NCBI RefSeq assembly: GCF_002571385.2
Contig: NW_019217801.1
Coordinates: 472,380 to 536,379, forward strand
Direction of reading: 5' to 3'
Origin: Stylophora pistillata
Lineage: Eukaryota
Length of the DNA stretch: 64,000 bases
Shown here: positions 314-37,281 of the stretch, piece by piece
How the letters are laid out: the number at the start of each line of letters is the position of its first letter
Numbering within the stretch: the stretch's first letter is position 1
Notes under the pieces: model-generated
Told to the model about the DNA's origin: nothing
Database searches by the model: none
What the model saw: the letters and a program-made list of their open reading frames with translations, nothing else
Made by a program: the position numbers and the translations under genes

Positions 314-1780
314 GAAGTTCATCTGTCGGCAAATCGAGCTTGTTTAACAGATGTGACGATGGAATTTCTTCTCGTTTCAAAGTTATTCCTAGTACCGAAG
401 GTGAGAAAAACGTTAAGCAATGAGTATGCAAGTGATCAAATGGCTTTTTGGGGAGTTCAGAGATCTACGTGCTATTCAAAATTGAATGTAAGTTTAAATT
501 TGTGTTCATTTGTACTCTTAGAGGACTGTAACACTATAGAAGTAAGTCTGGATAATGGCATAACAATGACACTTCAAATCTGGGATACTATGTATATGGA
601 AAGGTTCCTCCGCTCAGATGTTTCTTCTTATTTCCGCGGACGACATGTTGCTATTGTTGTGTACGACATAACGCAAAGATATTCATTTGAGAAGGCAAAG
701 GAGATTGTCGATATCCTCGCGCAATTGGCCAAGCCAGGCGACTTTGTAACACTTGTGGGGAATAAAGCAGATTTTCAAAGCGGAAGGGAGGTGTCCTTTG
801 AGGTAATTAATGTCTTTCTTCAGGTGATGCTATTGTTCTGTACTACAGTACCGCTATTCGCGAGTACCTCACTGCATACGCGAAACTCACACTATACGTG
901 TCACCACACGCACCTACGTGTTGCAATATATGTACTTACTTTCTTGTAGACCAGAGCTCATGAAATGAGTGTACTGAGACAAAAGTACGTGTAAATAAGA
1001 CGAAAAATTGGATTCGTAATTCTTCACTTCTGCTTTCGATACTCTCGTAGAGGTGTTTGTACCCTGAAGACGTTTATAACTTTCCTACCACATAAGCGAC
1101 AACTTATGTGCTGAACATAAAATCATGATGCAAATCATTTATAGAAAGGATCGAGTAGTGAAGTAGTTTAGGCGAGCCCTTGGGCAGATTTTTGTATAAT
1201 TCTATCATATAATTTTCTTTTTATGTCCTTAGCATTAAATCGTGTTGTAAGTTTTTTTGGTCGGGTCGCATGGGGAGCAGAATGCATCTCTTGTAAAATT
1301 TAAGCTCCTGATTGCAATGCAACTCTACACGTATCTTTTCGATTGACCGTCAATACACGAAAACATTCCACGCGTTCTAGAATCATTTAATTTGAGACGG
1401 AAACAGCTTAGAGCAACTATATCGGGCATTTGATATCCAGGCCGCTAAAAGCGAGGCCTTCCTGATTCAACCAACGTCAACAAAGCCATGCCCACCAGAC
1501 AGGTGTCAACAATCCGGCATTAGCACCACGCAAGCAACTTTTTCCGGACATTGACTTAACAAACGGACAGAAATGACTGACCCAATTCACCTACAGATCA
1601 GAAGTGACAAATGACAAAACACAGCTTGAAAACAGTTATTTAGCAGTAGGAGACTTTGAGATTATGATTTGTTCTTTTAGGAAGCACGGGACTATGCAGA
1701 CGGAATCAATATCATTGAGATTGTCATAGAAGTGTCAGCAAAGAGTGCTAAAAATGTTGAAGACCTGTTCTCTAAAGTAG
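314..1780 (+). CDS. Copy A Rab5-like small GTPase domain (exons 314-400, 522-802, 1681-1780)
   Basis: G1 GSSSVGKSS, G3 degenerate WDTMYME, AIVVYDIT, G4 GNKAD, G5 EVSAK; EARDYAD resembles Rab5 EAQSYAD. Confidence 0.85.
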
Positions 1781-36000: not shown

Positions 36001-37281
36001 TATTGTAAACTTTAACTTCGGTCTTAAGTGTGACGGATTCTCTTCCAACTACAATTTATGATTCAAAGAAAAACAGCTAATATGATTTTTTTTCAAGGAC
36101 TGCTCGATCGAATCATCCAGAATCTTCAGAGGATGCAACTCTGCGCAAGCAAGGTCGAAAGTAGCACTAACTTGACAGAAGAGTTAACAGCGATTGTAAC
36201 AGATAAGGGCTTTAGAATTTCTAACAATCCAGGGTCAGGAAACTGCATGTTCCAGGCCTTGTCAGAACAGCTTGAAACCGTCAATGGAATCAAAATCCTA
36301 CATGGCCAGTTGAGACGATCTTTAGTTCAGTACCTCGAGGAAAACCCAAAACTGGTGAGTTACTGTAAGCTACAGTTACTGTAAGCTAGGTACAGTTACT
36401 GTAAGCTAGGTAAAGAGAACTTGGGGTTGATCATCAGTTTTTGCTGCTGTGTTTATTTCTCTCTCCGTCACACGAACTGTTACTCCTCCTTGTTGGGACA
36501 CTAGTCCTTTTCACACCAGATATCTGCAAGCATTTTTTCAGGTTGGCTTGACAATTTTCCTTGCGTTTACATGTACACTCACGCGTAGAGAGAGGTGTAC
36601 TTTGACAGTGAGTTGTCTTGTACAAGAGTACGATAAGACAGTCACGCTATACAGGATTCTGTGAAGAGCTGTTATCGTGGATCTCAATTTCTCAAGCAAG
36701 AGGCACCGCAGTCTCCGTCCATGCGCATTCTCTTGTATTCAGATGGACTCTCTTGCAGAATGTTGTACTTAGTTATGTTAGTCGCAAGCTTAGAGAAATA
36801 TGCCTTTCAGAATCAATGCGCTACCGTCAGTTTAGCTCGGCTCTAAATGAGGCGAAGTTGTTTGAAGACCCTCCCACCGGTCTAAGCGATATCTTGAACG
36901 ACTATGTCTTCCTTTCTTTATTTTTGACTTAGTTAACGTTTTACTCCCGGTGAACAGGTTGACTCTTTTGTGGCGATATCTATTTGGAATCGAAATATTT
37001 ATTGCTGTTTTTGTTACAGCCGGATGGAACAGATCTGTCTCACTTTGTTCATGGACATGAAACGTGGGTTGATTACTTAACATGCATGAAACAAGATGGC
37101 GCTTGGGGAGATCACCTCATTCTCTGTGCAGCAGCAAATTGCTTTAAAACGTGCATTCATGTGGTCAGCAGTCTACACAATGATGTAGTCATCAGGCCAC
37201 ATTGTCATGTTGATGAAAGCAAGCCACTAGTACTGGGACATATTCATGAGGTACACTATGTCAGTCTTCAACCCATACAGG
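25106..37281 (+). CDS. Copy B: multi-exon Rab5-like-LRR-Roc-COR-GT4(deleted)-OTU protein, ~1,600 aa plus an unresolved 3' tail. Exons 25106-25154, 25697-25783, 25905-26185, 26994-27093, 28206-28667, 29387-29841, 30062-30791, 31331-31442, 32077-32326, 32826-33614, 34062-35016, 36098-36354, 37020-37281
   Basis: ATG at 25106 reads MALRFRIPLEFDVVLQG (cf. Rab5 FKLVLLG). All 13 exons are GT-AG and phase-consistent (4,789 coding nt). Confidence 0.82.
28206..28667 (+). CDS. Copy B LRR exon
   Basis: Paralog of 3566-4042; VLNLSQNNF, YLYVNDNRL, ELDLRNNQL. Confidence 0.9.
29387..30791 (+). CDS. Copy B Roc domain (exons 29387-29841, 30062-30791)
   Basis: GQDRAGKTS, WDFAGQ, GTHAD. Confidence 0.9.
31331..33614 (+). 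CDS. Copy B COR exons (31331-31442, 32077-32326, 32826-33614)
   Basis: Same exon sizes (112, 250, 789 nt) and motifs as copy A. Confidence 0.85.
34062..35016 (+). CDS. Copy B GT4-like exon with a 93-codon in-frame deletion
   Basis: 955 nt versus 1234 nt in copy A; reads GMFKN|AARAVV at ~34510. Confidence 0.85.
36098..37281 (+). CDS. Copy B OTU domain (exons 36098-36354, 37020-37281)
   Basis: GSGNCMFQAL, WGDHL, HYVSL; reading frame open through the donor at 37282. Confidence 0.85.

Follow-up and report, generated by a model that had tools for sequence, protein, structure and literature searches.

What kind of protein is encoded by two neighbouring series of open reading frames (ORFs) in the genome of the coral Stylophora pistillata? 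The ORFs lie in a stretch of 64,000 nucleotides (contig NW_019217801.1, positions 472,380 to 536,379 of the forward strand), here called the window, and all coordinates are counted from its first base. Taken one ORF at a time, each series looks like a run of small separate genes: a Rab-like GTPase, leucine-rich repeats (LRRs), the Roc and COR domains of Roco proteins, a GT4 glycosyltransferase and an OTU deubiquitinase. We read each series, referred to as copy A and copy B, as one gene for a cytosolic Roco protein composed of a Rab5-like pseudo-GTPase, LRRs, Roc, COR, GT4 and OTU and acting by an innate-defence or cell-death mechanism, a combined reading that we consider moderately probable.

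Pfam searches of stop-free stretches give, for copy A, the plus-strand series Ras (281-946, 59.8 bits), LRR (3550-4089), Roc (5449-6201 and 7080-7883), COR-A (8679-9038), COR-B (10686-11483), GT4-conflict (PF20706; 12032-13369) and OTU (14487-14831). The GT4 match scores 280.3 bits (E 3e-83) and runs from position 2 to 383 of a profile of 385. Copy B has the identical series on the plus strand between 25847 and 37334, and the DNA of 163-18093 (copy A) aligns with that of 25544-39140 (copy B) at 69-90% identity.

The joining of the downstream domains can be followed in RNA, where the evidence covers 9920-15900 of copy A and comes from two sets of polyA RNA contigs and the raw reads of two further runs. 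Public RNA runs containing this stretch are labelled as coral or as coral metagenome. The joints 11480|12059, 13292|14551 and 14807|15466, all of them GT..AG, are present in RNA contigs of two studies. They are also crossed by raw reads: two from COR-B to GT4 (11480|12059), five and two from GT4 to OTU (13292|14551), and 11 and nine within the OTU domain (14807|15466). RNA depth is essentially zero across the three introns, and in the stranded run copy A reads lie on one strand only. An RNA contig of 1,649 nucleotides (nt) comprises 286 nt of an upstream exon, the complete COR-B exon and 576 nt of the GT4 exon. The loose RNA sequence before 10692 is exactly that of 8934-8963, which places the COR-A to COR-B join at 8963|10692. 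From 10692 onwards the four-exon chain forms a single open frame that ends in ...HYVSLQPI and a stop codon at 15724-15726, and the transcript then crosses an intron in the 3′ untranslated region (3′-UTR) at 15727|16852. That COR-A to OTU in copy A are carried by one mRNA in one reading frame is almost certain from these observations. A preliminary description of the locus had placed the Roco, glycosyltransferase and OTU parts in one gene per copy, with junctions at 11480/12059 and 13292/14551. Both junctions are seen in the contigs of the two studies and in the raw reads, the single gene is confirmed for the part of copy A that runs from COR-A to the end of the coding sequence, and separate transcripts for the three parts are contradicted by the copy A joins.

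The upstream splice sites were placed in a three-way alignment of A, B and another close paralog, C, which lies on contig C372. Database and family searches were run exon by exon, and the joined protein was used for frame checks, for comparison of A with B and for domain comparisons. The model of copy A has 13 coding exons and 1,699 amino acids (aa), that of copy B 1,597 aa, and neither contains an internal stop. All model junctions are GT-AG and fall at homologous positions and phases in the two copies, in agreement with the earlier proposal of in-frame GT-AG splicing to a protein of about 1,600-1,750 aa in both paralogs. The whole 13-exon model of copy A is likely to be correct. Position 314, first given as the start of the locus, remains an exon boundary as the start of exon 2; the first exon precedes the window, at about -6209 to -6158 on the plus strand. 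This exon (MRSYDRIRPLWFKVVLLG, then gtaagt), about 6.2 kb upstream of the window, contains the start codon ATG and encodes the opening beta strand of the Rab-like domain. It falls outside because the first intron of copy A contains about 6 kb (about -5818 to window position 163; locus L002) that copy B lacks.

The remaining exons of copy A, all on the plus strand, divide the protein as follows. Exon 2 (314-400; acceptor cag|GAA, donor AAG|gtgaga) carries the Rab-like P-loop GSSSVGKS and exon 3 (522-802) the Rab-like core to which the Pfam Ras match belongs, with the switch II sequence WDTMYME in place of WDTAGQE and the NKxD motif kept. Exon 4 (1681-1780) ends the domain with its SAK motif and a phase-1 donor, TAG|gtaagt, its sites being conserved in A, B, C and contig L013. 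The LRR block (Pfam LRR_8 and LRR_4) forms exon 5 (3566-4042), which has a phase-1 acceptor and no start codon near its 5′ end. Roc is divided between exon 6 (5726-6174), with the P-loop GQDRAGKT, switch I and a variable acidic insert (Pfam Roc profile positions 1-45; splice sites conserved in A, B and C), and exon 7 (7080-7830), with the remaining insert, the switch II sequence DFAGQ and the G4 motif THAD (Pfam Roc, 31.3 bits). A short Roc-to-COR linker, exon 8 (8065-8176), is 80% conserved in A, B and C together with its AG and GT sites and is matched by the Stylophora protein P0115. COR-A is exon 9 (8714-8963; Pfam E 1.4e-5), whose donor at 8963 is joined to 10692 in RNA, and COR-B is exon 10 (10692-11480), which has a weak Pfam match and is spanned by the 1,649-nt RNA contig. 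Exon 11 (12059-13292; PF20706, 280 bits), with RNA joints on both sides, is a complete GT4-conflict glycosyltransferase with KG and E-x7-E motifs. The OTU domain is split over two exons. Its first half, which includes the catalytic Cys in GSGNCMF, is exon 12 (14551-14807), which has a Pfam OTU match, RNA joints and alignments to OTUD3 and viral OTUs; the second half, with the His in HEVHYVSL, is exon 13 (15466-15726), reached by the RNA joint 14807|15466 and closed by the stop codon TAA at 15724-15726. A 3′-UTR exon (16852-17100, the 3′ end being putative) is joined to 15727, and the loose-end sequence behind 15728 equals 16853-16882 exactly.

Copy B follows the same plan on the plus strand. 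Its Rab-like exons, with a Pfam Ras match, are at 25106-25154 (with the ATG), 25697-25783, 25905-26185 and 26994-27093, and its LRR exon is at 28206-28667. The Roc exons (29387-29841 and 30062-30791) and the linker exon (31331-31442) are followed by those for COR-A (32077-32326) and COR-B (32826-33614). The GT4 exon (34062-35016) has a 279-bp in-frame deletion that has cost it 93 aa, including the KG motif. The OTU exons are at 36098-36354 and 37020-37281, and the stop codon is in the next exon, 38009-38013. The 3′-UTR intron (15724-16852 in A, 37281-38013 in B) is conserved in the two copies: its donor is one base after the stop codon in A, and in B the stop lies in the exon that follows.

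The Roc domain scores 31.3 bits in copy A and 34.0 bits in copy B against a Pfam cut-off of 27, with the P-loop part on the preceding exon. Its motifs are G1 GQDRAGKT, G3 DFAGQ and G4 THAD, with about 150 aa inserted between switch I and switch II. In a local BLAST comparison the COR region matches that of the amphioxus protein P0148 (in which COR-A scores 56.8 bits) at E 1.5e-15. With a Roc domain and COR directly after it, the protein is a Roco protein. No Pfam match to NACHT or NB-ARC was found on any exon of either copy; the coral Roco protein may work like an NLR, and it stands outside the NLR/STAND family.

In the GT-B C-terminal domain, KG and E-x7-E are motifs that bind the nucleotide sugar; in the copy A glycosyltransferase FDLKGYD (KG) and PSRTEGFGLTALEA (E-x7-E) were aligned to GlgA, and MshA was matched as well. 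Copy B retains E-x7-E and has lost KG, and its match to PF20706 is broken into two stretches that sum to 188.8 bits and leave out the middle. In the OTU domain GSGNCMFHAL aligns with the DGNCLF motif of OTUD3, and HEVHYVSL stands at the C-terminus; Pfam OTU scores, for which the cut-off is 23.3, are 23.8 bits in copy A (exon 12) and 27.8 bits in copy B (second OTU exon). It is about an even chance that both enzymes are active in copy A.

The N-terminal part had been described as Rab5-like, a description that holds well: besides the Pfam Ras match of 59.8 bits, Rab5A and Rab5C are its best solved relatives (E 1.3e-14 to 9e-14), with Rab1A nearly equal, and its YFRG and VVYDIT sequences resemble Rab family motifs. 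Copy A keeps G1 (GSSSVGKS), G4 (NKAD) and G5 (SAK), whereas copy B has drifted to SKAD and SAM. Switch II reads DTMYME in copy A and DCPHLE in copy B, not DTAGQE, and the catalytic switch II of a Rab is therefore lacking. The domain is also without a C-terminal prenylated Cys motif; it ends at a splice donor and continues, in the model, into the LRR exon. It is likely to bind nucleotide without normal hydrolysis, and is best called a Rab-derived pseudo-GTPase.

The join of this head to the LRR exon, 1780|3566, which the preliminary description also gave, has GT-AG sites and preserves the frame in A, in B and in a foreign coral contig. The last Rab exon has a strong donor (AG|GTAAGT, GTATGT or GTAGGT) at one codon phase in A, B, C and L013, and the LRR exon has a polypyrimidine-AG acceptor of the matching phase 1 in A, B and the foreign contig L013. 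Distant paralogs have no Rab exon; in the two examined, the LRR exon follows a 5′-UTR acceptor and has its own ATG, the encoded proteins beginning M-E-S-Y-S-I-E-K-L-R-K-K and M-N-N-M-A-Y-L-S-K-E-E-L-R-R-K. That ATG is gone in A and B, and the LRR exon of copy B has no ATG until its last codons, so that translation must reach it from a coding exon further upstream. When the LRR exon was used to look for proteins that span the Rab|LRR join, the only matches were exon-sized ORFs of coral metagenome DNA, at 69% identity or less and none with a Ras domain. On the strength of the conserved sites and phases and of the lost ATG, the Rab-like part is very probably fused to the LRR-Roco part in one protein. 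An ancestral LRR-Roc-COR-GT4-OTU gene would then probably have captured the Rab-like head by way of the acceptor of its 5′-UTR intron.

The two copies have not diverged evenly. In each domain compared between A and B, the ratio of nonsynonymous to synonymous substitution rates (dN/dS) lies within 0.22-0.57, and both copies are under purifying selection. Synonymous divergence (dS) is 0.58-0.72 from the Rab-like domain to Roc and 0.10-0.20 in COR-B, GT4 and OTU, and the introns of A and B align only in the 3′ half; the 3′ half is on these grounds either younger or homogenised by gene conversion. The drop in dS between 314-15726 and 25106-38013 points to gene conversion or mosaic duplicates. Protein identity is 55-68% at the N-terminus against 83-91% elsewhere, a difference that mostly reflects age, not accelerated change. 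Positive selection on the N-terminal part was considered and rejected, as dN/dS there is 0.42-0.57 and the identity gradient follows dS.

Proteins of this general kind have been catalogued before. The GT4 clade in question is a predicted conflict-system effector found on STAND and Roc-COR NTPases (Kaur, Burroughs, Iyer and Aravind, eLife 2021, PMC8195603), and Acropora digitifera has more than 500 GT4 paralogs in variable architectures (PMC8195603). Bacterial proteins with LRR, AP-GTPase and COR carry a variable C-terminal effector that can be GT4 and are predicted to act against invaders (PMC8195603, Fig. 6D). In the Fig. 6 source data, an amphioxus 'ImmLRR+LRR+sGTP+OTU+GT4' is tabulated, as are 'TPR..+sGTP+GT4' and 'GT4+sGTP' from Acropora (PMC8195603). 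OTU is absent from the main text of that paper, and among all mentions of OTU in that source data file there is no cnidarian OTU+GT4. By Pfam, amphioxus P0310 (C3YRK2_BRAFL / XP_002601187.1) consists of LRR, Roc, COR-A, COR-B, OTU and GT4; P0320 has LRR, COR-B, OTU and GT4, P0317 has OTU and GT4, and P0148 has Roc, COR-A and two GT4 domains. The preliminary description did not recognise the combination as described, and a claim that it is undescribed is not supported in view of the bacterial LRR-Roc-COR-GT4 proteins and the amphioxus set listed by Kaur et al. (2021) and confirmed by Pfam in P0310. The coral architecture is a variant of a catalogued kind and not a new category. What is new is a transcript-supported coral Roco-GT4-OTU family with GT4 placed before OTU, the capture in one subclade of a Rab5-like pseudo-GTPase with a degenerate switch II, and the association of OTU with GT4 in two phyla.

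Comparison with each known system brings out likeness and difference. Amphioxus P0310, an uncharacterised member of an expanded family, has the coral set of LRR, Roc, COR-A, COR-B, OTU and GT4-conflict, but its OTU precedes its GT4, it has no Rab-like head and its LRR arrays are longer. The amphioxus and coral OTU domains are 37-41% identical and have the unusual HY[A/V]SL ending in common; the amphioxus relatives have HYA(SL) but keep DGNC where the coral has SGNC. The coral GT4 is only about 25% identical to that of amphioxus, against 50-58% to the coral GT4s on NACHT and caspase proteins, and for this reason the coral and amphioxus fusions may have been assembled separately. Bacterial LRR-Roc-COR-GT4 systems have the same LRR sensor, Roc-COR switch and variable C-terminal effector, but are prokaryotic, have a single effector, sometimes with GT4 in a neighbouring gene, and lack the OTU and Rab-like modules. 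The GT4-NACHT and GT4-NB-ARC proteins of Acropora belong to the same GT4 clade (50-58% identical) and show the same logic of an NTPase switch plus effector and the same lineage-specific expansion, but their switch is a STAND ATPase and not Roc-COR, their GT4 is N-terminal and they have no OTU. The fusion of a glycosyltransferase with NACHT is said to have been first reported, from Acropora digitifera, by Hamada and co-workers in 2013. MFHAS1, LRRK1/2 and DAPK1 have the LRR and Roc-COR tandem of the coral protein, whose Roc G1, G3 and G4 motifs are Roco-type, including THxD, but they carry a kinase or a death domain, or lack an enzymatic output altogether, and are without GT4, OTU or a fused Rab-like domain. 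The insert of about 150 aa also sets the coral Roc apart from them; a similar split is found in amphioxus P0148, in which Dynamin_N ends at residue 546 and Roc starts at residue 610. A coral genome paper describes glycosyltransferase domains that are amplified and linked to NACHT and TIR (PMC10236652), and in it Roc, OTU and GTPase are absent as whole words.

This genome holds a large family. About 25 paralogs of the COR-B exon are 41-88% identical to it, and about 35 others are more distant; at least 100 copies of GT4 are present, those beside COR-B being closest to the window GT4 (66-85% identity), and the OTU exon has about 50 copies that are at least 50% identical. At least nine further loci have COR-B, GT4 and OTU in this order on one strand within about 6 kb: all three parts are found on contigs C372, C539 (twice), C294 (twice), C70 and C481, and COR-B followed by GT4 on C287 and C2245. 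Several other family loci are degraded. The COR-B/GT4/OTU loci have undergone a lineage-specific expansion in this genome, and the Rab-like exon is limited to the closest subclade, namely A, B, three loci on C372, and C283. No recognisable domain was found in seven ORFs upstream of a distant paralog on C539 or in two ORFs of the C481 stretch. Most OTU-exon copies (54-84% identical, about 50 loci) have no COR-B or GT4 exon listed beside them, the OTU domain being itself a module that has expanded and is combined with many partners. A compact paralog on the minus strand of C372 (141400-147600, locus L008) has Rab-like, LRR and OTU exons within about 6 kb and no listed GT4 or COR-B match, and is possibly a shortened architecture.

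Beyond this genome, two independent coral metagenome contigs, of which one is from a Tara sample, have ORFs for Ras, LRR, Roc, a COR-B-like domain, GT4 and OTU in the same order. Starting with exon 3, which encodes the Rab core, every exon through to the final one of OTU is present there in collinear order, at 54-87% identity. Public S. pistillata gene models give the relatives as fragments, such as a 640-aa 'OTU domain-containing protein' and 'hypothetical protein' entries. No coral protein with Roc or COR was found among the best 150 matches to the GT4 exon in a set of 1.84 billion representatives. A profile built from amphioxus P0148 and, as separate rows, the window exons returned only amphioxus proteins; the search words were mostly amphioxus, and its result is thus blank for corals. 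No contig encoding the protein P0067 is on record.

How such a protein might work is suggested by its relatives. The variable N-terminus, consisting of the LRRs and, in this subclade, the Rab-like module, would bind a ligand or a modified host target, and binding would shift the nucleotide or dimer state of Roc-COR. This shift would release the two C-terminal enzymes, of which GT4 would move a sugar from a nucleotide sugar to a target molecule and OTU would strip ubiquitin or a ubiquitin-like tag. The logic is that proposed for the bacterial LRR-Roc-COR-effector proteins and for coral GT4-NACHT, and by this analogy the role of the coral Roco-GT4-OTU protein would more probably than otherwise lie in innate defence or cell-death signalling. 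The sensor-switch-effector scheme put forward in the preliminary description is reasonable in the light of GT4 being attached to STAND and Roc-COR NTPases (Kaur et al. 2021). A bolder version, which we regard as a long shot, is that the Rab5-derived pseudo-GTPase might be an integrated decoy for effectors by which a pathogen or symbiont modifies Rab5 to arrest phagosome maturation; Roc-COR would sense the hit and release GT4 and OTU, the pair being a conserved two-enzyme cassette of corals and amphioxus. If this were true, an animal Roco protein would work like a plant NLR with an integrated decoy.

Several observations weigh against a defence protein of this composition. The dN/dS is below 1 even in the 'sensor' part, and the A/B pair carries no sign of an arms race. 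The COR matches, each on a single exon, are below Pfam gathering scores (COR-A 25.4 bits, E 1.4e-5; COR-B 17.4 bits, E 0.004). The GT4 deletion in copy B (279 bp, in frame, 93 aa) takes in the domain linker as well as the KG motif, which binds the nucleotide sugar, so that the dual outputs of sugar transfer and deubiquitination may be confined to copy A. OTU proteases usually have an Asp three positions before the Cys and an Asp or Asn two residues after the His, but in both A and B a Ser takes the place of that Asp (SGNC) and a Val stands two residues after the His (HYV); with these residues the coral OTU would form an atypical subfamily, and its activity is uncertain. RNA support begins at COR-A, and the joins further upstream, including that from Rab to LRR, are inferred from the genomic sequence. 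If left unspliced at 1780, copy A would give a stand-alone GTPase of 175 aa that stops two codons beyond.

The last two points bear on the possibility that the Rab5-like exons are a separate small upstream gene and that the Roco-GT4-OTU gene starts at another, unrecognised exon or at an internal ATG. Such an arrangement would fit with RNA evidence that spans 9920-15900 and therefore lies downstream of 1780|3566, with the stop that a retained intron would bring two codons on in A and five codons on in paralog C, and with the more distant Roco-GT4-OTU paralogs that have no Rab exon. It would leave without purpose, however, a strong donor that is phase-conserved in A, B, C and L013 and demands a downstream acceptor; the LRR acceptor matches in phase in A, B and L013, the LRR exon of copy B has no ATG until its last codons, and the complete chains of A and B are open. 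A separate Rab gene is accordingly quite unlikely. Somewhat less improbable, though still unlikely, is that copy B is a decaying duplicate with a dead glycosyltransferase and that only A represents a functional architecture. The loss of the domain linker and KG motif, the further drift of its Rab-like motifs (SKAD for NKAD, SAM for SAK) and the fact that the RNA support concerns copy A all agree with decay, but the deletion is in frame, every splice site is intact and the 1,597-aa chain reads through without a stop, the remaining GT4 has a dN/dS of 0.44 and the 3′ half looks recently homogenised with A (dS 0.10-0.20).

A different function is conceivable for the intact protein, that of a regulator of membrane traffic or signalling like LRRK1/2 or MFHAS1, whose Rab-like head would target endosomes and which would not sense invaders. 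Animal Roco proteins are described in reviews as acting in endolysosomal traffic with Rab GTPases, the head is Rab5-like and dN/dS is below 1 throughout. Yet the C-terminus of the Rab-like domain is fused in the model, which would make prenylation impossible, and its switch II is degenerate; the genes have expanded in tandem and in a lineage-specific manner, with variable N-termini, their GT4 is of the 'conflict' clade that in corals is also carried by NACHT, caspase and Death proteins, and a TPR-CHAT gene adjoins them. A role in traffic is, on balance, unlikely, and a fused Roco protein of defence or cell death is the reading retained here.

Among eukaryotic Roco proteins, we know of none studied at the bench whose output is a glycosyltransferase or a deubiquitinase. 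In a laboratory coral, from a group where the 'conflict' GT4 is hugely expanded, this locus offers one that is intact, full-length and supported by transcripts. The GT4 deletion of copy B provides a natural contrast, and there are also several paralogs and, in a second coral, a relative. The locus also shows that public gene models split the Roco-GT4-OTU family into fragments, and suggests a route by which a Rab-like module may be captured through a 5′-UTR intron. Such a capture is noteworthy, as LRRK2, the most familiar Roco protein, acts through Rab GTPases. Coral disease and the control of symbiosis are two fields in which the family is a candidate for study.

Some further features of the locus lie outside the gene model. 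Two ORFs at 9611-9928 and 9935-10237 were considered as exons and rejected: they have no Pfam match, are skipped by the RNA and lie inside a dispersed 1.4-kb repeat (9250-10650) in the intron between COR-A and COR-B of copy A. About 900 candidate copies of this repeat were found (904 at first look), those listed being 76-95% identical, and copy B is without it; about 145 bases at its 3′ end match in reverse too. RNA depth over 9250-10650 probably stems from other copies of the repeat. At 15690-15728 the depth of RNA contigs rises into the thousands over the last 30 coding bases, with several continuations after 15720, 15721 and 15728, and this exon end seems to be shared with abundant paralog transcripts or another element.

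Elsewhere in the window, a long intronless ORF on the plus strand (48401-51807), with TPR repeats followed by a caspase-like CHAT domain, runs into N at 51808; it is another conflict-type architecture adjoining the Roco pair. A short minus-strand ORF with an ALKBH8_N-like match (18598-19110) lies between the Roco copies, and two reverse-transcriptase ORF fragments lie on the plus strand beside an N gap (55833-57072); all of these are probably retroelement remains. A BTB/POZ ORF on the plus strand (59243-59791) borders an N gap.

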